Assembly: GCF_016432865.1 (NCBI RefSeq) | Contig: NC_067403.1 | Span: 200,322,001-200,386,000 of the forward strand | Length of the DNA stretch: 64,000 nt | Reading direction: 5' to 3' | Source of the DNA: Antechinus flavipes | Lineage: Eukaryota | Shown: positions 49,305 to 64,000 of the stretch, piece after piece | Position numbering within the stretch: the first letter of the stretch is position 1 | Layout of the letters: each line of letters opens with the position of its first letter | The notes under the pieces: model-generated | The model's database searches: none | Told to the model about the DNA's origin: nothing | Seen by the model: only the letters and a program-made list of their open reading frames with translations | Translations under genes and position numbers: made by a program

Positions 49305-50472
49305 CTGAAGGAGGAAGGGCAGGAAGGTTGGAAGAGATCCAAGCAGGGAAAAAGCTGAACTAGATCCCTGGAGACAGACATTCCTCATTCATGATCTTGG
49401 TGGGAGGTTGGAGGGGGGGAGGCAGAGGAAGAGACAATGTATGATATTGTATCTTCCCTTTCCCCCCTCACACACAGCTTCAACTTACCAAAAATTTGTT
49501 GATTCTGCTTCAATTACTTTTCTCATTTTTATTCCTTTCTTCCTCTCATCCACTCTTTTTTCTACCTACCCTTCTTTTCCTGTTTTCTCTATCTCCCTTG
49601 TCTCTATTGGTTCCACAATTTTTATGTCTTTGTCTTGTCTATCTCTCATTTTGTCTCTACCTCTTTCCTTCTCCTTCCTTTCCTCCTCATCCTCCTCTTT
49701 GTTCTCTCTCTTTTTCTTTCTTTTCTCCCACCTCTCTCTCTCTCTTCCTCTCCTTCTCCCTTCTCTCCTTCCTCCTCTTTCTTCCTCCCTCCTCCTATTT
49801 TTCTCTGTCTCTGTTTTCCTGTTTCTGCTTCTCTCTTCTCTCTCTCCTAATCTTTCATTTCTCTCCCCCTTTCTTTATTTCTCTCATTCTCTTCATGGTT
49901 AGATTTCCACCTGAATTTCATGTTTTTCTCCCTTTATCTCTTTCCCCTTCTGTCTCTGTTTCTCCATGCCTTCCATTCTGATTAAATTTCATCTCCTGCA
50001 CATCTCTGAACAGCCTTAGGTCTCCTCTCTTTATAGAGCTTTTCAAGTCTGGGATCGCTGGAGGGACAGAGGAACCAGGTTCAGACAGAGTTTCCAATGC
50101 CCAGAAGGTGGGAGTGTGAATAAGCAAGTATGTGTATGTTGGAGTCAGTGAGTGTGTGTGTGTGTGTGTGTGAGGGGGGGGGTGCGTGGTTTGTATGCTG
50201 TGTGTGTGTGTGTTTTTAAGAGTTGGAGGAGGGATTATGGAAGGTTTTGAGTGAATGTAGGGGGAAGGGGCTGAGAAATATGTGTCTTGGAAGGAGAAGG
50301 GGAGTGGAAAGAGAACGGGCTGAGGCACAGAAGTCTTGATTCCTACGAAGGTTCCTGGAGGTACCAACTGGACTCAGACTCGGACCTTGAGACAATTCAA
50401 TTCAATTCAACAAAGATTTCTAGAACTGACCTGACTAGAAAAAAACCGACCTGAGAAGGAGGAGAGTCTCAC

Positions 50473-50920
50473 CTTTCTTCTTCGCCTCCTCTTTGGACTC
50501 CCCAGGCATCGGGGTGAAAGTATGGGGAGTTCGGAAAGCCGGGGTCCCTGGTCTTGTGGTTCGAGGAACCGAAGTCGTCTGGGTTCCTGGTCGTGAGGTG
50601 GGAGTAGCAGGAGCCGGGGAAGTTGAGGACCAAGGGATTCTAGGGGTGAGGGACTCAGGGGGCCAGGGACGAGGGGTAAGGATATTGGGGATGGGAGTTG
50701 AGGGCCGAGAAGTTCGGGGGACCTGGAATTTCGGTGTCCTGGACCATGGGGCGGAGGTGGTAGGGTCCGGGGAAATAGCAGGCCTGGAGGTTGAGGGGAC
50801 CTGGTTTTCCGAGGTCCGGAGGCGGGAAGTTGAGTTGGCAAAGACTGGAATTGCCCCCAGCCTGGGGCTGAGGCGAGAACTCTGTGCTAGGACGGTCAAG
50901 GTAAGCAGGAACGCCCGCAT
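50473..50920 (-). CDS. CPXM1: CPXM1 exon 1 (signal peptide + Pro/Ser/Thr-rich region)
   Basis: ATG at 50920 (gccATG) gives MRAFLLTLTVLAQS. The frame is open to a phase-1 donor AAG|GTGAGA at 50472, which joins exon 2 in frame. Confidence 0.85.
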
Positions 50921-51059
50921 GGCCAAGACATGGAGCGGGTAGACGAGGAGATGGATTGGGGGAAAAGCTGTGTGGTGTCCGTCCGTCCGTCAGTCAGTCT
51001 GTAGATCTGAGTCTCCCTCCCGGTCTGAGCTCCTTTCACTGCACTGCCCCTCCCCCTTG

Positions 51060-51080
51060 CCCCTCGCCTCCGCCCCTTCC
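51060..51080 (-). promoter_or_regulatory. GC boxes of the probable CPXM1 proximal promoter
   Basis: cctccgcccc (GGGGCGGAGG on -) about 140 nt upstream of the ATG, within a pyrimidine/purine-skewed tract. Confidence 0.4.
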
Positions 51081-51515
51081 TCCCTGTTCTCCCCTTCCCT
51101 CTGAGTTGTCCCAACCCAGAAAGTGAGGGGAGGTTATGGCTGGCCCGCTCTAAGCTCAGGTCCCTCCCCCGACCAGCGCCCCTTCGATATGGAATAAAAA
51201 GCCGGGAAACTGAGGCTCAGGTTTCTCGAGTATTCCTCTAGCCACCTTCCCCTTCCCTAGTCCTGCCAGTAACCTTTAGGTAGTGAAATCCAGGAAACTA
51301 AATTGGGAGAAGACGGGAAGGAGGGGAGGAAGGGGGGAAAGGGGAGGGAGGAGAGATAGGAGGGGGGAATCTCATCCACGTGCCAGGCTTCTATCTACAA
51401 CTCGCCACTCCCTCTTCTTCAGGCTGTCCAGAGACTCCCAACCCCCCCTTTTATATCTGGAGGAGCTAGAAGGGATGCTCCGCCAGGAGGGTCCTTTTCC
51501 ATTCCGACTGCAAGG

Positions 51516-51533
51516 CTCCAGCAGGGGGCGGGA
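51516..51533 (+). promoter_or_regulatory. CTCF consensus site
   Basis: CCAGCAGGGGGCGG (51518-51531) fits the core consensus CCASYAGRKGGCRS at every position. Binding is not demonstrable from sequence. Confidence 0.55.
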
Positions 51534-52687
51534 CTGTGGGAGGAGTATACTCTCTGGGGCCTTGAAGAGGGGGATCAGAGGAGATGGGGGAGGGGATTTT
51601 GCTCAGGGAAAGACCCTAGCAGCTAAGCTAGGAAAAACCAAGCTGCGGACCCGAAGCTCCTGGTGCCCAACCCGACCGTACCCTCCCACCATTTCTGAGA
51701 GAGTGTTGAAGAGGAAGGAAACTGAGGCTGGAAGTATGTGGGAGGTGGGAAAAGGAGAGTTCCATCTTTGTTCAGTCTGGATGGAGGACTGGAGGCGAAC
51801 ACTGGCATCGGAGCTCTCCAATCCACTTTCCTTCTCTCCGCCCCCGCCATCTGCCACGTTCCCGGTTATGTAACTACAGCTGAGGTTGCAGATGCAGAAG
51901 GGAGGGAACCGGGCCCCGACAGATGCGGGAGGGGGCGGAGCCAACGTGGGAGCTGGGGGTCTTTCGGCTAGCTCTAGAAGATCTAAATCCCTCCGCTTTA
52001 AAAATTCTACCTGAGTCCAACGGAACTGTTTCAGTCATTCTCTTCCTTCTTTGCCATCTCCTTAAGACCCGGGGAGGGTTCCCATCCAATTCCATAAACA
52101 TTTATTGGATAAAAACCGAACAATATCTACCCTCAAGGAACTTGTGTTCTCTAGGGGTTGGAATGGGTGCGGGAGGACTATCCCTAGCATCTGAAAACTC
52201 GATCTCTTCCATCAGCCCCGGGACTGTGACTCCCCACCCGGTTCCGTACCTAAGGTTGCCATACACCCACCCACCCGCTCAATGGGGTCACAATAGGATC
52301 AGAGTCGCCTCCCAGGAGCTGGGACTGGCCTGAGAAGAGGGGCCTGGGCAGTTCCAAAAGCAGGGGTGAGACCTCGGCCCCTGGAATGGGGTTGGTTAAG
52401 GCATTCGAGGGCGGAGGCGGCAAATGTGGAAGCCTCGGGGATATGGGGGTCAAGGCTGAAGATGGAGAGGCTGAGCTAAAGCCGGGAGGAGGAGCTGAGA
52501 TGGGAGAAAAAGGACTAAGACTAGGGGCGGAGAGAAGATTTAGCTTCAGGGAGAGGCGGGCGGAGCTGATCTTGGAGGGGCGGTGCTTTATGGATCTCCT
52601 CTCCACCCTCCAGCCCCCAACCCCAGCTCCTCCATTCCATCTGGGGCTGGCTGAGTCCCGGGCCCCGCGGGGTCATCAACGGCGGGA

Positions 52688-52770
52688 ATGAACAGGAAAA
52701 AGATAAATTGGGACCAGTCGCTGAGGTCTGGCAACACTGATAACTCCCGCAGTTCTCCGCCCTCGAGTGT
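52688..52770 (+). CDS. Exon 1 of a putative 221-aa membrane protein (MNRKKINWDQSLRSGNTDNSRSSPPSS)
   Basis: ATG with G at -3 and 83 nt open to a GTGAGT donor at 52771 in phase 2, matching the phase of the acceptor at 53173. Confidence 0.6.
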
Positions 52771-53173
52771 GTGAGTGACAGAAGCCAGTGGCCAGATGCT
52801 CCCCCAGAAGTTCCTGGCCCTATCACTCCACTCTCTCAGGAGGAGCCCTCTTGCCTTTCTAGATTCCCCTCCCCTCCAACTTTGCTCTCTACACCTTCCC
52901 CGTCCCTCAACTGGCCCACTCCTCCGTGCCCCACTCCCAGTCTCTTAGGACTCTATGATTTCAAGAGACCCGGCTATGTTTGCGCCCTGAATCCGGGGAC
53001 AGAGGAATAGCTCCGGAGGAGCTGGTGGGAGGGGGAGAACTTTGCGGGGGGGCGGGGATTTGGGAATGGGATTTGAGAAGTGAAGTGCCCACAGGCCCCG
53101 GCTGCTGTCGTTTTTCCGACACATAATCCCCTGCCCCACTTTCTGTGCCTATCGTGCTGTGTGCCCCCCCCAG

Positions 53174-53357
53174 GTCCCGGAATTTGCAGGAGTCCGCGGA
53201 CTGCGTGAGGAGTCCCCCACGCCCGCGGTACAGAGGCAGGAGGAGGAATATTCGGTGCCAAAAATGGATTGAGGAATGTGTGAAGGCGTGCACTAAAGAC
53301 AAAGACAGGGTCCGAGACAAGGACCGGGATCAAGATAGGTCCAGGGACCTGGACGAC

Positions 53358-53397
<40 letters not shown>

Positions 53398-53756
53398 AGA
53401 TTGGGGATGGGGACGGGGATGGGGACGGAGATGGAGATGGGGACGGGGATGGGGACAGCTCCACGTGGCAGGTTCCATGCTCGAGCCAACCCAGCCAATG
53501 CAGCAGCTACCTTTCCTCCGAAACCCATCGAACGAGACACCCCGAGGCCTTCAGCTTGCACTGGCCTCATCCTCTGGAGCTGGCCCTGGACTTGTCCGCC
53601 GGCCTGGCCCTGCTGTCCTTGCTGGGAGAAGGGGGCTCAGAAATGATGCTGCCGCCCTTGTTCCTCTTTATCCTTTACCTGTTGCTCACCATGCCCTTGG
53701 CGATGGTGCTCGGCTGCAAGAAACGAACTCGAAGGCTGACTTGGAGGGATGGTTAA
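53174..53756 (+). CDS. Exon 2 of a putative 221-aa membrane protein (acidic GD repeat + C-terminal hydrophobic hairpin), in the C20orf141/TMEM239 syntenic slot
   Basis: Strong acceptor (tttctgtgcc...ccccccccag) and 583 nt open to TAA. Two hydrophobic stretches are followed by a basic tail KKRTRR. AATAAA lies at 54018-54023. Confidence 0.65.
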
Positions 53757-54017
53757 TCCAGAGCCCTGGGTCTAGTACACGCTCAGCCCCAAACGCAGGG
53801 AGCTCTCCTCCGAAAACAGAACAAATCACCAAATATTGAAGTCCATATCTGGAATACAGAGCCCCGATCAGAAGACAGATTCGATCTCCCTAATCCCTGC
53901 CTGACCTCCAACAAGAATCTTGAATTGGAAAGCAAACACGGGAGCCCAAAATATAGCCCGAGTACAATGGATCCCAGACCCAAACAGGACTCAGACTGGA
54001 ATACACCTGGTAAAAGC

Positions 54018-54023
54018 AATAAA
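54018..54023 (+). terminator. Polyadenylation signal AATAAA of the putative 221-aa gene
   Basis: About 260 nt after the stop at 53756. Confidence 0.55.
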
Positions 54024-54370
54024 GGGGCCCTGACCCAGCTGCCACTCAGTATTTTGTCCTGCTGGATTGGGGATGGGAAGGGGACGGGGGAGGGGAATGT
54101 CATATTCTGTTGACTTCCAAAAACAGGCAATGGTGACTTGTGATGTTGGGAATAACCATATGGATTTCAAGGTTTGCAAATTACTTTTCTCAAATCAACC
54201 CTAAAATACGAATAATACCCAATTTATAGTTGGGGAAACTGAGGTCCGTATAGATTAAGCGACTTGCCCAATCTCTCTTAAATATACTATGCTTTCCTCT
54301 AAGCTTCTCTACCATTTTAGATCTCAGTTCATTTGATTGGGGAACAAGATTTGAGAGACATGCTGGTGGG

Positions 54371-55290
54371 TTTTTTAAATTATTATTTTAATAGCATTTT
54401 ATTTTTCCAAAACATGCAAAGATAGTTTTCAAAATTCACCTTTTGCAAAACCTTGTGTTCCAAATTTTTTCTCTCCTTCTCTCCCTCCAAAAGACAGTAA
54501 GCAATCTGATAAGGTTAAACATGTGCAATTCTCCTAGATGTATTTCTATATTCTATATTCATCATGCACACACAAAATCAGATCAAAATATGAGAAAGAA
54601 AAAAAAAACAAACAAAAAAATGGTGAAAATACTATGCTTTGATCCACATTCAGTCTATAATTCTCCTCTGGATGTGGATGGCACTTTCCATCCCAAGTCT
54701 ATTTGAACTGCCTTGAAGTATCTCATTATTGAAAAGAACCAAGTCCATCATAGTTAATCACCCCATGATCTTGTTATTGTGTACAATGTTCTCTTGGTTC
54801 TACTCACTTCACTCAGCATCAGTACATGTAAGTCTTTCCAGGGTTTTCTGAATCCAGACTGCTCAACATTTCGTATAGAACAAGAATATTCTATTACATT
54901 AATGTACCAAAACTTATTCAGTCATTCCCCAACTGATGAGCATCCACTCAGTTGCCAATTTCTTGCCACTACAAAAAGGGCTGCCACAAACATTTTTGCA
55001 CATGTAGGTCCCTTTCCCTCTTTTATATGATCTCTTTGGGATACAAGCCCAATATAAACACTGCTGGTTCAAAGGGTATGCACAATTTGGGCATAGTTCC
55101 AAATTGCTCTCCAGAATGGTTGAATCAGATTACAACTCCACCAACAATATATTAGTATCCCAGTTTTCCCACACCCTCTCCAACATTTATTTTTATCTTT
55201 TCCTGTCATCTTAGTCAATCTGAGAGGTGTGAAGTGGTGCCTCAGAATTATCTTAATTTACATTTCTCTAATCAATAGTAATTTAGAGAA
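54371..55290 (-). mobile_element. LINE-1 3' end, antisense
   Basis: T-rich start followed by the reverse complement of the L1 ORF2 end (cagtttcccacaccctctccaacattt..., tgagaggtgtgaagtggtgcctc). Boundaries approximate. Confidence 0.8.
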
Positions 55291-56148
55291 TTTTTTTTTC
55301 ATAGATTTACTGGGTTTAATTTGGCTCTTAGGATCTGGATAGCTTAAACATAGCTTAAAAACACAGATGTTAACCATATCCTAGGAAATAGTACATACAC
55401 ATAGAAGACCCAGAGATGGAAATAAACTTGAGTGTCGGGCAGGTAGAATTGTGTTCTTGGCTATTGGGAAGGAGAGAGTTGGGGAGGAGCATGGTGTGGA
55501 AAGAAAAGGACTCTTGTGGAAGGAAGAAAGGGATGGCAGAAATGGGAGCCAGCAGAGGGAGCAATGGGTTAGTAAGCGGTTTAGGTAAGTGTATGCAGTA
55601 TCCGTTGCTTCTATGAAGTGGCAAAGGAGCTAGCCCTTGGACATCAAGGGACTGAAGCTCTAAGGCCTGAACCTGGGGCCTCAACTAGATTCCCTTGCAT
55701 TCTTCCCCCTTTTATTTTTAGATCCCCAACACACAACACAAAAACCTATCTCCATGACATCCCAGATAAGTAGTCAGCCAGTCTTTCATTTAAGACTTCT
55801 ATTGATGGAAAACTCACTGATTTCAATTCTTCAGGAATTCTTCAATTCTCAGCTTCAATTCTTAGGAAACTTCTTGCATGGAGCTTAGATCTGATTCTGT
55901 ACCTTCCACTCATTTCTCCCTGTTTTGCCTTCAGGGGCCAACACGAACATCAAATCTATTTTACACTTGACAAGCCTTCAAGTACTGTAAGATAACATGT
56001 CCTAAATGTTCTGTTTTTCAGACTAAACACCCCCAGTTCATTTAACCTACTCTCCTGAGACATAAAAAAGGCAGCCTGACACAATAACAAAGAATAGATT
56101 GGCAGCTATATGTACTTGGCTGAAATACTGGCTCTGTTAGTATGTGAG

Positions 56149-56186
<38 letters not shown>

Positions 56187-56288
56187 CATATATCTAACAA
56201 AGAGACAGAGAAAGAAAGAGAGAGAGAAGTGACGTAGCTAGGTAATGCTGTAGTAGATGCAGCACCAGGCTTGAAATAGGAAGATTCA

Positions 56289-56582
56289 AGAACACTGGGA
56301 GATGAATATAAACTGCTCGCATTTTTGTTTTTCTTCCCGGGTTATTTATACCTTCTGAATTCAATTCTCCCTGTGCAACAAGAAAACTGTTCGGTTCTGC
56401 AAACATATATGGTATCTAGGATATACTGTAACCTATTCAACATGTAAAGGATTGCTTGCCATTTGGGGGAGGGGGTGGAGGGAGGGAGGGGAAAAATCGG
56501 AACAGAAGTGAATGCAAGGGATAATGCTGTAAAAAATTACCCTGGCATGCGTTCTATCAATAAAAAGTTATTTAAAAAAAAA
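56289..56582 (+). mobile_element. Young LINE-1 3'UTR fragment with 16-bp TSD, nested in an older SINE
   Basis: Near-identical to 36000-36290. TSD gaaataggaagattca at 56273-56288 and 56583-56598. The flanks join into a MAR1/MIR-like SINE. Confidence 0.92.
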
Positions 56583-59500
56583 GAAATAGGAAGATTCATC
56601 TTCCTGAGTTCAAACTTGGATTCAAGCTAGTCTGGGCCAGTCACTTAATTCTGTTTGCCTCAGTTTCCTCATACATAAAATGAGCTGGAGAAAAAATGGC
56701 AAACCACTTAGTATGTTTGCCTTAGAAAACTCCAAATGGGGTCCCAAAGAGTCAGACACAAATGAACAACAAAGTTGCTAGATTATCTGTAAACTCTTCA
56801 GGCTTGAACTTCTAAGATCATGATCTAAGAACGTGATAACCATCATCTCTCATGGACTTCCTGAAAAGTGATTATTATCCCTTTGACAAGCTCCAGGGTC
56901 TTCATGGTCTTCCTAAAATTTGGAGTCCAAATATGGTCTTATCCTGCTTGGTAGTATTTATAACCTCCATCATTTGGGACTCTTAAACTTTCTTAATATA
57001 GTCTTAGATTGCACTAGAATTTTTCTTTTCTTTGCCTCTTTGTTAACTCAATTTAAAAGATAGGAAGAGTCATCTCCTGGAGGGGGATATATAGTATATG
57101 ACAAAAAGATTCATAAGAATGGAGTTTTCTGGAGGCTTGCAAATTTAATTAGTCCTTAAACTGCAATGGAAGAGAGAAGGAGAAAAATAGCTTCCTAGTT
57201 CCACTAAGCTAAATACCAGAGTAGAGTGACAATATAGAAAGGGTAATGATTAAAATGCTCAGAAATCCACATACTAAATCCAGAGAAGAAGGTCGTAGTA
57301 AACTACTTGTTGAATTATTGGAATGAACACTAAATTCAACAGCTACTGTAGCTATTCAGAGGTTGGAAAATTAGTACACTTTCTTGGAAATTGATTCAAA
57401 TGAAGAGCTATTTATTTGGAGGGCAACACAATTACTGTGTTTCTTTTTCTTTTTCTTTCTTTTCTTTCTTTCTTTTTTTTTTTTTTTTTTTTTGTTGTTG
57501 TTGTTGTTGTTGAGGCGACTGGAGTTTAATGATTTGCTTTTGATTTTAGGGCCAGTGCTCTCTCTATTGTACTGTCTAACTGTTCCTACTGTGGTACTTT
57601 AGATACAACAGTATCTAAACGGTCTGGTTGGGGTAAATGAAAGGTAATAATGTTGACAGTTAGTTGCAATCTATAAAAATATATGCAAAAGAAAAAGTTT
57701 TCATTGGATCTTAGTATTACTATGGCAAATACCATAAGCTTGAACCAACACAAAAAACAATATTGAGAAAAATGTTTTTAATTAAAAATAATTGAGATAT
57801 GCTGGTAACATGCAATAATCCTTGTTATCTTCACTATTTGTACGTGGTTGGAATTCCCATTTATACACATGACTCCTCAAATTCCTCATTTTTATTATAT
57901 TATCTCAGACTAGCTAATATTATGTCTATTTCTTATACTGTAGTAGTACAAAAAAAGAACAATTTGCTCAAAATAAACTTGCAGGGTAAAAATTTGGGTA
58001 ATAAATTAAATGGGCAATACTCAACAGCTCATGCCTAAATCCACAACATCTCCCAATCACTAGAGATGAACATTTAGCCTGACCCCAGTCCCACAGTCAA
58101 GCAAACAATCCCCAATCTTGGAAATTAGGATATGGGAATTTAATAACTTTTGTATTTGATGATTAGGAAAGGTGTTTGATCATCTTGTCCTAACCACCAT
58201 GAATCAGTGAATTTTCAAGATTCTTAATGGCAGTAATACATGGATTCCATGGCATTGATGTCTGGCATTAGAAGGAATTAGGAGAAACCTCAGTATCTAT
58301 AACAGCTGTCATATCAATTCCCTAAAGTATGTCATCTGGAGAAAACAAATGTCTGCATATTTTGACCAGATAAGGAACAGCATCCGAAGAATATCCTGGC
58401 TCCATAACCATTTTCTTTGCATTCCTTCCTTCATCTTCCTTTTCCCTTCTACGCCCTGCTTCAAACTCTGTCCCACATCTCTGTTTGTTTCAATGTGCAA
58501 GTCTGAGCTGGGAGCAGGTTGGGTAACATCATATGTATGGGAGGGCCAGTTAATTTGATTGCCACAACTTATTTCATAATGTCTGGGAAATCGATTGTTT
58601 TGACCATTTTCTACAGCCTGTAGAAAGATATTTACTATTCAGCATCTTTGTAATTGCAAATGCCATCTTTTTTATGAATTGCTTGCCAGTAAATATATAT
58701 ATATGGACACAAAAATTTGTGATTGCCTTCTAGCCCATTTCACAGATATTCCAATATATGAAATATTAAGTTAAAAACCTCGAGTCAATATTAGACTGAT
58801 GACTACAACTAGAGCATGGTTTTGTGTCTGGACACAGTATCAAGAAAGTTGAGTTAAATTAAAAATCCAAGCTGGAAACAAACTGAATGGCACATTTGTT
58901 GTTATTGTTGAATGGTAACATGATATTGTTGATAATGATGATGATGATGTTTTACCATAAGACCTGTTGTGAATTAGTGGTTGTCTGAGTGAGGTGGGAG
59001 TTCTGAGACACTGAGAAAATTCTTTCAGAACCCAGCTAACTAAGACTATAAAAGCAGATTATTTCCATGAGAATGAGCCAAACAAACAAGCAAATACCAA
59101 TGATCCATGAGATTGAGTTGGATTGTCTCTCTTTCCTTTTCTTCAATTACAAAGCTCAAAAATCCAAAGTGTACACTCTATAAGAGGTGAGATAATTCCT
59201 TAACACTTTGTACTTCCACTAGTCAATTCTCTAGAAACTTTAAGATTCAAGAAAAATTAACATAGATTAGATATGGGATCTTTCCTGTTTAAAAAGAGAA
59301 TACTGAAAAGCCATTTTTCAAAAGTTCAGCTGTACATGTATTTTCTCCAGTCCTCTGCAAGTAAACATATATCCAACTCATCCAGAGAAGACCTCTACCT
59401 CGAGAAGCAAGCTAGAGAACTTTTATTAACCCTTATCTCCAGCTTTCCTGAAGCCTTATATTTAAAGTGAAGAATAATCTTCAATACATCACTTTCAAAT

Positions 59501-62500
59501 AAATAAATTTAGTGCTTGAAGGCCATACTTCTTTTTCCTTTGAAAAATGTGTATATTGATGTACCATAAAAATAACTTATTTGAAAAAATTTTAAGGTTG
59601 AAATTAAAATGGATATGGTAACTTAATAAATTTTTTTGTCTTTAAGAAAAGCAAATCTTTGCATTATAAAAATGGATATGAAAAATTTAGAGAAACATGA
59701 GAAAACTTGTATGAATTGATGCAGAGTGAAGTAAGCAGAAACAAGAAAACAATGTAAATATACATTGTAAAGCATAAAAATGTAAATGGAATAGGAAAAA
59801 AGTTAAACTGAAAGCAGTGCTATTATTTAAATGAAGTTTGGTCCAGGAAAAGACATGAGAAAATGTACAGCCCTCTCCTGTTCTTTCTACAGATAGTGCT
59901 ATGGATATGGATAATTGCATGTACTGTCAGAATCTATTGGTCTGTTGCTTAGTTTTGCTAAACTTGTTTTTCTTTTTCTTTTTTGTTTTTTTTGCTAAGA
60001 GAATTGGCTTCAAAGGCTGAGAGAGTGAGGAAGAATAGATTGAAAATGAATGAGATCTCTCTAATCCATCTGTCTATCTCTGTGTGTATTCATCCCTGCA
60101 GCAGGAATGAACCGTAGTACTTCCCATAGAGTTGGCCATGTGCTCTAGCCACTTTCGGTGAGGATTTCTCAAGGATAAATGTGACCCAACCACTCCTGAT
60201 TGATTCCTTGATCTTTATGACTGGGGTTACATCAACGACTATTGTTCCGGGAGTTAGTAGAATCCTTGATCTCTCCCCCATTCCTAGCAAACTATAAGAG
60301 CAGTACAAAGTAGAATCCTTGATGTCTCCCTTTGAATCTTATGAGTTGCCTAGACAGTATAGGTCTAAGGTGAAAGTGAAATCATCTTTTAAAAAGAAGT
60401 TTCACAATGTTGTCTTTACCTTTTAGGAGACTATAATGATTTTAACAGGGTTTTCTTGGTGTGTGTGTGTGTGTGTGTGTGTATTTAAAGCATTTCTTTT
60501 GTGGTGAAGGAAATAAATAGCTATTCTATATCTTTTATCTGTTTTGAACATTGGTATCTTTTTGACAAGAGATAGTTAATCAATTTGGGGAAGGAACATG
60601 GAAGTACACTTTCTGAAAGAGGGTTCAATTAATCTCCTAATCTAATCTAAATCTAATTTTGTAGAAATCTGGGGCACACTTAGCCTTGTGTTAGAGATTT
60701 TTTTAAACCATAAGTACAAGCCAAAGAGATCAAGAGGAGCCTTGATTTCCTGTCTTTGGGGTTAAGCAACCCCCAAGATGAATCCATAATCTGTTTGAGC
60801 ACAGAACCAGAATACTTTGAGTAAGAACTTCCTCATGCCATACGCCACAGAAAAAGAAGAAAATCTTATAAACTCAGAAAAATAGCTTTCATTCAACATG
60901 ATATGGAGCTCGTGATATACTGATGGAAAAGGCAGTTCAGAGCATCTCTGCTGTGAATAAAACTCCCCACAAATTTTTGGGAGGCATAAACAATAAACAA
61001 ATGGTCTATGCCTAAATGTGGGTCCCTTAAAATGTTCTTTGAGAACATTTGCCTTCTATGTAGAGAATAGTTTGAAGCATGATAAGTCCAAAAGTAAGGT
61101 GGTCAATTAGAACAATATTAATTGACTCTTAAAAAGAGGTGATGAGAAGCCCAAATAGGATAGAGTGGGCCTGATTGCAACTGGTCCCCATTTCATTAGG
61201 TTTGGTATTGGAACAAACTGAGATGCTCATAGGTCATCCAACAGTTAACAAAAGGAGGTTTACATGCCGTGATTGAGAGGCTATTCAACAAAGATCCTGC
61301 ACATTTGGCTTAGGTAAACAAGGACCACTTAGAAATCTGTGTGGTTGAGAAGAGAAAGGGAAACCTGATGGCAGTCTTATCATAAAGTCACATGAATAGA
61401 GAGAAGGGGACAGAAACTAGAGATATCAAGGGATGTGACTGACAAGACTTGAGATGTGACTGAATATGGGAGGAAGAGTCAAGAATGACTCTGAGATTAA
61501 CAACTTGATGACAGGAGACTGAAATGCCTTCAGTAGCAACACAGAAATTTTCAAAAGAGCTAAGATTGAGGGAATTTTTAGTTGAGTTTAATTTGAGGAG
61601 CTGATAGGACATAAATCAAATACCAGTTATAATGAAGACCAAGAATTTAGGAGGGAGACAAGATTTAGAAATCATCTATATAGAGGTGATGCAAATAGGC
61701 AAAATTAGGTTTAATATAAAGAAAAATTTCTGAAAAATTGGAACTCCACTGAACTCCCTTGAAAGGTAATGAGTTCTTCCTTACCAAGGGTTTTCATACT
61801 AACATAATGGAGACTCATAATGGAGGGAATTCTTGTCCCAGCACTAGTAGAATGAGATGGACCTGGAGGTCCCTTCCAATTCTAAGATTCAAGACTAATA
61901 TTAATGCTACTATTTCATAAAGGCTCTAGGATATTTTTAAAAATTGATCTCTTTTGTTTTACATCAGTTCTATTTTCCTATTATATCCCACCTCTGTCCC
62001 TTCCTAGAGAGCCATCCTTTGTAGTGAAGAATTTTAAAAGAGGAGAGAAAATTCACAGTTCAGCAAAACTAACCCACATATCACCTAAACATGTTATATG
62101 TAATGTTCCAAATTCACTGATCACACCCTCTCCCACGTAGAGAAAAGGTATCTTTTCATCTCTTGTTTGGGACTAAGCTTGGTCATTATAAATTCATAGC
62201 ATTCAGTTTTTTCTCTGTTGCTCTTTTCATTTATGTTGTTGTAGTCATTGCCGATACTGTCTTCCTTTGCTAGGATTTAAATTTTTTTTTATACTTTTGT
62301 TCATATGAAAACACCAATCCTGTCTCCCAAATCCTAGACCTTTTATCCCCTAGTCCCCTTGTATCCCCAGCATGGTTGTCTTGCTGGAGCTGTCCAGGCT
62401 GAGGGAACCATACTCATTGTCATCACCATGGATTTCCAGGTTAGCTAGGGCTGGGTTTCAGGAAAGCTGTGAAGGTTTGGGAGGATGTTAATGCAGGCTC

Positions 62501-64000
62501 AGATGATCCTAATGTGAACATAGTGGGGGCAGGATAGAAGGCTCTAATGATCTTGGTAGGTTCTATCCAATTACTATGTCCAGGGTTCCTCTTGTGCCCA
62601 TGTAGGTTATGTATGCCCTTATGGGTCTGGCTAGATATGGCTTGCAAGGAGGTAATAATGGATGTCTCTAGGGTTTACCTCTAGCCTTCTCTAAAAGAGA
62701 CTGTTCTTGTAGAAAGAGAAACAAAAGTTTGAGACCAGGGGCTGATCATATAACTCGACCTCACTTAAATTCCAATTCAGGAGCAAGTTAAGGCAACACT
62801 TATGGTATCTTGGTCCTCTTTGAAAACAAAGGATGAACAACAATACTACATCTGCCCTCTTTAAAGGGAGTTGCCAGAATTATATCCATCTTATTCCTTA
62901 AATATTGCTACTCTAAGCAAAAAAAAAAAAAAAAAAAAAGTTCAAATTGCTCTCCTGATCACTGAACCGGGTGCCCTAAGCTACATACCTGAGACTTGAC
63001 TACCTTGCTGATAAATGCCAGTCCCACAATTAATTCACATAGATTGCAAATCCATTTATCCAAGTGGACAGCAAAATAGAAATCAGAAAAAGTATACAAA
63101 GGACCATATGTACCACACAATCTAGTCTGAATGAATTTTTTGGGGGGAAGGGAAATAAATTCACTCAACTAAGAGCAAAGAGGGCCAGATCTCACCCAAA
63201 GGCAAATTCCCTGAAGTTTCTAGTGTAGTAAGCTGGGGAAGGGGATATGATCTAGTGCCTGCTCCTTTACATGCTGATATCTTCCTAGAGTTTCTCCCCC
63301 TTCAGAAACTTGAAGAGAGTCTGAAATTAGATTTTCTCCTTTGAAGCTAGAAGCTAGAAAACCAGGATCTTTCTTCTCTCCTGTTCTCACCAACTCCACC
63401 CCTTATGCAGGTGAGTACCAAGAAATTAGTATCCAGTCATGAGGAAAGTTCCGTATAATGCACCCTTGGAACCTAGGGTTACAAGTGAAACAAAGGGATC
63501 ATGGAAATCTTTCTATAATCTTTCCCTCCTCTCTCTCACTGCCCAGGACTGGGCATAATTGTGGATCTAGCTGGTCCAAAGAGAATTTGGTCACAGCTAT
63601 TATGTGTGTGTAGGGTGTGTGTGTGGGGAGGATGACCTCTGGAGCAGCCCCCTGCTCTATATGTCACAATGCCTTCCCTCTCCCCTGGCAGTGTATGTCC
63701 CCAGAATGGCAGGCCCGATAGGGAGGAGGTGAGGAGTGGGGAGGTTGGGGAGGGAGAAGAGGAAAACAGGACTTCACAGTAATGACTGTGTTCCAACAGA
63801 GCTGGCCAGAATTTTGCTTGTTCCCTGTGTTTGGCAAGGATCCTCTCTCTGGGGTCTCTTGGGCTGCTTGCCATGCAGGTCCCAGCTGTCTTGAGTTTAT
63901 TGTTCTCTTCCTAATAACTTTAGTCCTACTCTACTTTGGTTCTGACACTGACACCCATCCCTCACTTCCTCATCAGAGTTCTTGTCTCCCCATCTCTGGT

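Follow-up and report, generated by a model that had tools for sequence, protein, structure and literature searches.

A probably unannotated gene, seen so far in marsupials and predicted to encode a small membrane hairpin protein, lies beside a CPXM-type carboxypeptidase gene in Antechinus flavipes

Does the DNA lying head-to-head with a CPXM-type carboxypeptidase gene in the marsupial Antechinus flavipes encode a protein of its own, and if it does, what kind of protein and of what kinship? The question is raised by a window of 64,000 nucleotides (nt) (NCBI RefSeq assembly GCF_016432865.1, contig NC_067403.1, positions 200,322,001 to 200,386,000 of the forward strand), in which all positions given below are counted from the first letter. 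An earlier note, made from the letters of this window, had proposed at 52688-54023 a hidden two-exon gene of 221 amino acids, and had compared it with human C20orf141. According to the analysis presented here, the locus likely contains a transcribed, spliced and protein-coding gene for a small membrane-anchored hairpin protein, which has so far been found in marsupials.

The sequence features on which the gene model depends can be read directly in the window. The start ATG at 52688 is preceded by a G at position -3 and, further upstream, by an in-frame stop at 52652, and the whole exon carrying the ATG begins at 52614. The donor GTGAGT after 52770 and the acceptor AG at 53172-53173 join 83 and 583 nt, a coding length that divides by 3 and gives 221 amino acids and a stop. 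A second donor lies after 52725, and both donors keep the reading frame into 53174 (Table 1). The AATAAA at 54018 is the sole poly(A) signal from the stop codon to 55000. The ATG, the donor after 52770, the acceptor, the in-frame join to 221 amino acids and the AATAAA had been named in the earlier note and are present as described. The note had also stated that the track of open reading frames (ORFs) misses the gene except for a GTG-started frame, and the mechanical six-frame ORF list agrees, since this frame at 53145-53756 (203 amino acids) alone represents the gene. If the intron is retained, the frame from ATG 52688 reaches a TGA at 52772-52774, and the first Met of exon 2 is residue 157 or later. 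Therefore, the conserved frame is readable from spliced RNA only. Two other candidates within the locus were rejected. The antisense ORF at 52974-53570 (198 amino acids) mirrors the hexamer repeat, and the likeness of 51299-51315 to 52704-52720 (17 nt, 82%), taken up as a possible duplication of the first exon, is a chance DNA match.

Evidence of transcription was obtained from Logan contigs of four runs (X1, X2, X8, and X11) from four studies, which were aligned to 51500-55000 at 90% likeness. The contigs come from a relative in whose coding intron about 8% of the letters are unlike those of the window. Behind 53499 this relative has 9 nt inserted in frame, which code for Cys-Thr-Gly, the extra residues of the protein of the dunnart, Sminthopsis crassicaudata; therefore, it is the dunnart itself or a species very closely related to it. 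The 3' ends of contigs lie at 54009, 54019, 54036, and 54043, and the depth is zero over 54074-54307 in X1, X2, and X11 (three of the four runs). The contig ends mark the 3' end of a transcript about 20 nt past the AATAAA, which argues for RNA and not for contaminating DNA. On the 5' side, the joint 52365^52614 (GT..AG, plus strand) is listed in X1, X2, and X8 and corresponds to an intron in the 5' untranslated region (UTR). The description of the gene as two-exon is correct for the coding part but not for the whole gene, to which the 5'-UTR intron at 52366-52613 adds a non-coding exon.

Splicing can also be read from the places at which contigs break. The Logan assembly graph uses k=31, consistent with the 31-letter words of the alignment tool, and break points were predicted for such a graph with spliced and unspliced forms coexisting. 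For 52365^52614, the prediction is a common end at 52365, an unspliced-only contig at 52336-52642 and a downstream start at 52613, and exactly these break points are found in three runs. For the joint 52770^53174, a common end at 52772 and an unspliced-only contig at 52743-53203 are predicted, and the contigs of X1 (52613-52772 and 52743-53203) fit to the base. For the joint 52725^53174, an unspliced-only contig at 52699-53201 and a downstream start at 53172 are predicted; X11 fits this form, with contigs at 52699-53199 (2 letters unaligned) and 53172-54019. In X11 the summed depth drops between 52718 and 52737, from 351 to 92, and amounts to 964 on exon 2, contig depth being a poor measure. 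The evidence that the coding intron is spliced in the relative is strong but indirect. The gene has at least 3 exons, with at least 1 non-coding and 2 coding exons, and two coding isoforms, whose products would have 221 and 206 amino acids.

The 5'-UTR breaks of X11 are unlike those of the other three runs, with a contig at 52345-52655 followed by two 87-nt contigs at 52626-52712. This pattern possibly reflects an alternative acceptor at the AG of 52625-52626, or allelic bubbles.

Orthologs were sought with the exon-2 product as query, and exon 1, with its 27 codons, was compared by tblastn of the ortholog proteins onto the window. A profile of 4 sequences was additionally read against 1.84 billion representative proteins. 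Six further marsupial species were found to possess the protein. The closest is LOC141546453 isoform X2 of the dunnart (209 amino acids, 84% identical, expectation value (E) 5e-104), and an unnamed protein of the sugar glider Petaurus breviceps (203 amino acids) matches at E 4e-43. LOC114023412 of the wombat Vombatus ursinus (207 amino acids) was found by word search. The profile scan gave LOC110221113 of the koala Phascolarctos cinereus (205 amino acids, E 3e-91), LOC141518228 of the bilby Macrotis lagotis (207 amino acids, E 1e-47), and LOC103095854 of the opossum Monodelphis domestica (227 amino acids, E 1e-42). The orthologs span four orders, Dasyuromorphia, Diprotodontia, Peramelemorphia, and Didelphimorphia. 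Similarity to LOC103095854-like proteins is significant and covers exon 2 from end to end.

A frame of about 200 codons is open in 7 species of these 4 orders, and its start, phase, and stop region agree among them. Conservation of the ORF in other marsupials had been proposed as a check on the gene, and it is borne out in all six further species. In the protein-level comparison by tblastn, the dunnart and wombat proteins align with their N-termini on 52688-52756 and with the remainder on 53172-53753; conservation therefore extends to both coding exons. In the glider, wombat, and koala proteins, the first exon has the long form modelled in the earlier note. The dunnart isoform X2 reads ...LRS/QNLQE, which is the product expected from the window's donor after 52725.

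No relative outside the marsupials was found in Pfam, in the profile scan of the 1.84 billion proteins, or in three word searches. The profile scan gave 17 other matches (E up to 0.001), which were rejected as matches of D/G/E-rich or T/D-rich repeats at profile positions 41-184. The protein collection searched holds no near-identical protein of the window's own species, and the gene is therefore probably unannotated there. A literature search found no mention of the LOC names of the orthologs, and the family members are without name, Pfam family, or paper. From these comparisons, the gene appears to be an unannotated ortholog of an uncharacterised marsupial family, so far seen only in marsupials. 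The word hidden, used in the earlier note, is apt for this genome but not for other marsupial annotations, which already list the gene.

The rate of change along the locus is uneven. Compared to the relative, about 8% of the letters are changed in the coding intron (52771-53173, with 7 gap letters) and about 9% in the first 250 nt or so of exon 2, and only 2.9% at 53459-54036, which comprises the C-terminal coding half and the 3' UTR. The single indel in exon 2 and the 3' UTR is the one of 9 nt, and the flanking non-coding pieces have indels of 1, 2, 3, and 4 nt. At the protein level, the window and the dunnart differ by 21 substitutions in residues 1-95 and by 7 in residues 96-193 of the exon-2 product, with 0 in the two hydrophobic helices and the loop between them. 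The window protein is 40% identical to that of the opossum overall. By region, identity to the opossum is 75% in helix 1, 55% in helix 2, 33% in the tail, 28% in the basic part, and 27% in both the acidic tract and the linker; in overall ranges, 55-80% applies to the helices and 24-33% to the other parts. Only 28 columns are the same in all 7 proteins; among them are two Arg and a Cys of an RR-x2-RC motif, the Glu-Cys pair that comes six residues later, and a number of helix positions occupied by Leu, Phe, Tyr, Thr, Pro, or Gly. Such a distribution indicates that purifying selection acts on the hydrophobic hairpin. The earlier note had held that the gene would fall if this segment were free of constraint; the hairpin is in fact the most conserved part, and in the dunnart it is 100% identical. 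The N-terminal half keeps its character, basic and then polyacidic, but its sequence changes. If the relative is the dunnart, the small numbers at hand suggest relaxed or positive selection there.

The architecture of the predicted protein is described with the residue numbers of the exon-2 product. The exon-1 peptide is hydrophilic, and therefore no signal peptide is present. Residues 1-43 have a net charge of +8, with an Arg-rich patch at about 14-25. The acidic tract of residues 44-94 has a net charge of -21 and varies in length among species, and it is followed by a Ser/Gln/Cys linker (residues 95-131). An acidic loop of 8 residues (152-159) separates the two hydrophobic helices. The tail of 12 residues (182-193) has a net charge of +5, and the distance from the end of helix 2 to the C-terminus is 12-17 residues in all orthologs. 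This composition is the one that had been read from the sequence earlier, since the basic patch, DK/DR run, (GD)n tract, S/Q/C linker, two hydrophobic segments, and basic tail were all found. An AlphaFold2 model built from 4 sequences is poor (predicted local distance difference test (pLDDT) 48.8) and was used for helix positions alone (133-150 and 159-179).

In the proposed arrangement, the C-terminal hairpin, made of the two hydrophobic helices and the short acidic loop, would anchor the protein in the membrane, and the basic tail and the entire N-terminal part would lie on the cytosolic side. A hairpin with both ends cytosolic would be the most economical topology because of the positive-inside rule. 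The cytosolic part would then consist of the Arg-rich patch, a helix with two invariant Cys, and the long and variable Asp/Gly(/Glu) polyanionic tract, which probably serves as a charged, tethered module for the binding of cations or proteins.

The main alternative topology is a single-pass tail anchor, in which helix 2 alone spans the membrane and helix 1 is cytosolic or interfacial. Helix 2, with Kyte-Doolittle values of 2.2-2.6, keeps its short distance to the C-terminus in all orthologs, as such an anchor would, and helix 1 scores 1.5 in dasyurids and holds a conserved Glu and Asp. However, helix 1 is not amphipathic (hydrophobic moment 0.06), and its Kyte-Doolittle values reach 1.8-2.1 in sugar glider, koala, and bilby. 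Moreover, the basic tail (+5) would become lumenal, contrary to the positive-inside rule. Among predicted structures, two-helix membrane hairpins come nearest to the C-terminal part of the opossum protein, but the likeness is weak (template modelling score (TM) 0.5-0.7 over about 65 residues). On this evidence the single-pass form is considered unlikely, and the hairpin is retained as the preferred topology.

The coordinates of the gene and of the segments of its product are listed in Table 1.

Table 1. Coordinates of the gene parts and of the encoded segments in the window
Feature	Position	Strand	Remarks
Upstream non-coding (5'-UTR) exon, 3' part	52270..52365	+	Donor GGG/GTGAGA; contigs extend back to at least 51973
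5'-UTR intron	52366..52613	+	GT..AG joint listed in X1, X2, X8; good pyrimidine-tract acceptor
Coding exon 1, long form	52688..52770	+	27 codons + 2 nt (GT); donor GTGAGT from 52771; ortholog N-termini map here
Coding exon 1, short form	52688..52725	+	Alternative same-phase donor GAG/GTCTGG; would yield a product of 206 amino acids
Coding intron, phase 2	52771..53173	+	Donor GTGAGT; C-rich pyrimidine tract, AG acceptor at 53172-53173
Coding exon 2	53174..53756	+	193 codons + stop TAA at 53754-53756; ortholog matches E 5e-104 to 1e-42
Predicted helix, exon-2 residues 26-48	53250..53318	+	Two invariant Cys, C28 and C35; motif RRxxRC-x5-EC
Hexamer repeat GACGGG x16.5	53358..53456	+	In frame, encodes (GD)n; within acidic tract
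Hydrophobic helix 1, residues 132-151	53568..53627	+	Kyte-Doolittle 19-mer 1.5-2.1 in 7 orthologs, moment 0.06; 60-100% identical
Hydrophobic helix 2, residues 160-181	53652..53717	+	Kyte-Doolittle 2.2-2.6 in all orthologs; 55-100% identical; clear transmembrane segment
3' UTR	53757..54043	+	AATAAA 54018-54023; RNA 3' end about 54036-54043 from contig ends

Several observations weigh against the explanation of the locus as a gene for a hairpin protein. Only X8 is recorded as RNA, and X1, X2, and X11 were guessed to be RNA. All of the RNA evidence comes from a relative that is 5-8% different and not from the window's species. The joints 52770^53174 and 52725^53174 are absent among the joints listed, and the coding splice rests on contig breaks and depth steps; at the coding intron, X2 and X8 have unspliced contigs alone (52613-53392 and 52613-53354). 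The first 250 nt of exon 2 diverge as much as the intron does, so that purifying selection on the exact sequence is not seen there, and if the relative is the dunnart, nearly all nucleotide changes in the N-terminal half of exon 2 alter the protein. As to the product, the structure model is poor, and in dasyurids helix 1 is borderline as a transmembrane segment.

Some of these observations would agree with a non-coding or promoter-associated transcript of the bidirectional CPXM1 CpG-rich region, whose frame is held open by the G/A-rich hexamer repeat and whose database proteins are meaningless. In agreement with this, unspliced contigs prevail in two runs, all of 51500-54043 is covered, the N-terminal half of exon 2 changes at the intron rate, and the six orthologs are all automatic "uncharacterized" models with none found in the literature search. 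However, a frame of about 200 codons would hardly be kept open in 7 species of 4 orders by such a transcript. The best conserved part is the hydrophobic C-terminal one, which is free of the repeat and differs from the relative about 3 times less than the intron, and the sole indel of exon 2 is one of 9 nt. Additionally, Rfam has no match. A non-coding transcript is therefore regarded as very improbable, and the protein-coding explanation is maintained.

The kinship of the gene beyond the marsupials is a separate matter. Human C20orf141 and TMEM239 (20p13) are small hydrophobic proteins with C-terminal hydrophobic segments. The gene could be the marsupial ortholog of eutherian C20orf141 (or TMEM239), diverged past the reach of sequence detection and old in therians, a reading that agrees with the favoured explanation except on the age and name of the gene. 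The positional lead is fair. The gene adjoins a CPXM-type gene in divergent orientation, and no other candidate ORF is present in the 10 kilobases downstream. Human gene lists give the order EBF4, CPXM1, C20orf141, FAM113A, TMEM239, VPS16, with both genes after CPXM1 (PMC3704668). In the pig, an array probe set covering both C20orf141 and TMEM239 is high in sperm RNA (PMC7084236). The gene also evolves fast: identity is only 40% between the window and the opossum. With such divergence already within marsupials, even genes of common origin would be expected to escape detection over double that distance.

The searches give no support to this kinship. In Pfam, neither the 7 orthologs nor the last 98 residues taken by themselves gave a match. 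TMEM239 is a Pfam family, and no match to its profile was obtained with either set of queries at E up to 10, in a library whose holding of TMEM239 is unconfirmed. The scan of the 1.84 billion representatives returned marsupial clusters and (GD)n matches only and no eutherian protein. Word searches, made with the C-terminal part of the window protein at E up to 1 and with that of the opossum protein at E up to 10, yielded nothing beyond marsupial proteins or the query, and the Atlas and PDB searches showed no similarity to C20orf141 or TMEM239. The gapless alignment to C20orf141 offered in the earlier note sets one Leu-rich membrane segment against another, and it is not evidence. To our knowledge, the Arg/Cys motif and the polyacidic tract have no counterpart in C20orf141 or TMEM239. 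Orthology to these genes is therefore held as a tentative and rather doubtful reading. Of the interpretation given in the earlier note, the gene model and the lineage-specific hairpin protein with an acidic N-terminus have stood, through the orthologs in four orders, the contig structure, and the conserved hairpin, but the kinship to C20orf141 has gained no support from these searches.

If the orthology were true, a small membrane-protein gene would have stood beside CPXM1 since before the split of marsupials and placentals, keeping its hydrophobic hairpin alone while everything else, a lineage-specific polyacidic repeat among it, was rewritten past recognition. The locus would then be a clean and datable case of homology-detection failure at a syntenic position, and not of gene birth. 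The locus also lends itself to the question of whether marsupials and placentals inherited their small orphan genes at the CPXM1 boundary from a common source.

Several further features of the protein were recorded. The diprotodont and opossum proteins have an additional CxxC pair upstream of the two invariant Cys; dasyurids are without the first Cys of this pair, and the window protein is without the second too. The four Cys within about 20 residues in diprotodonts and the opossum could make a small metal-binding knuckle. The only Pfam hit, TrAA12 on the (GD)n tract, is below the cut-off and was rejected as a low-complexity match. A PDB profile-search match on the acidic tract (E 0.33) was rejected too. 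A feature search in the ESM Atlas gave no match, and the structural neighbours found in the Atlas were rejected as kin, being generic bacterial two-helix membrane proteins with TM below 0.3 by query.

As to the surroundings of the gene, the minus-strand neighbour, which points away from it, contains exons for discoidin (F5/8-type-C), Peptidase_M14, and carboxypeptidase-regulatory domains, and a signal-peptide-like first coding exon at 50435-50926. It is a CPXM-type carboxypeptidase gene, arranged head-to-head with the new gene, and its domains and strand confirm the position divergent from CPXM1 that had been claimed before. Downstream, 54100-63500 is AT-rich and holds no comparable ORF, and the window ends ahead of any PCED1A or VPS16 exon. 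Rfam gave no match on 50500-54500.

The block at 52336-52642, which coincides with the 5'-UTR intron, contains four or five GC boxes of the GGGCGG type. Only 2-3 of its 307 letters (about 0.7-1%) are changed in the dunnart-like relative, with one 15-nt indel, compared to about 8% of the letters of the coding intron. The block probably acts as proximal promoter or regulatory element, either for the new gene or for the bidirectional pair that it forms with CPXM1. At 51500-51953, the contig depth is far above that of the gene and continues leftward (a 2985-nt contig of X2 with depth 411, and a 1759-nt contig of X11 over 51500-52246). Contigs are strandless, and this coverage may belong to a long CPXM1 5' end, a further upstream exon, or a separate transcript. 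A G-rich segment at 54065-54099, 25-60 nt beyond the RNA 3' end, is 77% identical to the DNA of the coding GD repeat; it could be a relic of that repeat, or else a downstream element for polyadenylation. The gene does not include 54308-55000, an interspersed repeat in which short joints and loose ends are numerous and the summed contig depth ranges from thousands up to about 170,000. The region of the first CPXM1 intron includes a pyrimidine-rich stretch of low complexity at 49400-50000 (GC skew -0.75, AT skew -0.72) with long Ser/Leu/Phe pseudo-ORFs.

The analysis supplies a gene model that was missing from a dasyurid genome; the model comprises three or more exons and two coding isoforms, and its 3' end is defined. 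Moreover, unnamed database entries are united as one marsupial gene family, in which the membrane hairpin is conserved and the charged N-terminal half changes fast. Predicted LOC entries in six other marsupials were already known, so that the gain here is one of ordinary annotation, and nothing indicates an unusual mechanism.

Compared to known systems, the predicted protein resembles tail-anchored and helical-hairpin proteins in having no N-terminal signal peptide, a hydrophobic anchor at the extreme C-terminus (hydrophobic segment or segments within about 30 residues of the end), and a bulk that is predicted to be cytosolic. This class is defined by topology and is not a family. Human C20orf141 and TMEM239 are listed next to CPXM1 (PMC3704668), and the new gene adjoins a CPXM-type gene; sequence similarity to the two was not detected in the searches, and the Arg/Cys motif and polyacidic tract are not known from either of them. 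The nearest comparison is with the marsupial LOC family itself. The acidic tract is a long (GD)n in dasyurids, and in bilby and opossum it is shorter or rich in Glu. The N-terminal exon of the opossum isoform is different, and the upstream CxxC pair of the diprotodont proteins is missing in the window protein. Apart from these differences, the order of parts is the same throughout, from the N-terminal exon over the Arg/Cys motif, acidic D/G/E tract, and Ser-rich linker to the two hydrophobic helices and the basic tail, and the homology extends over the full length at 40-85% identity.

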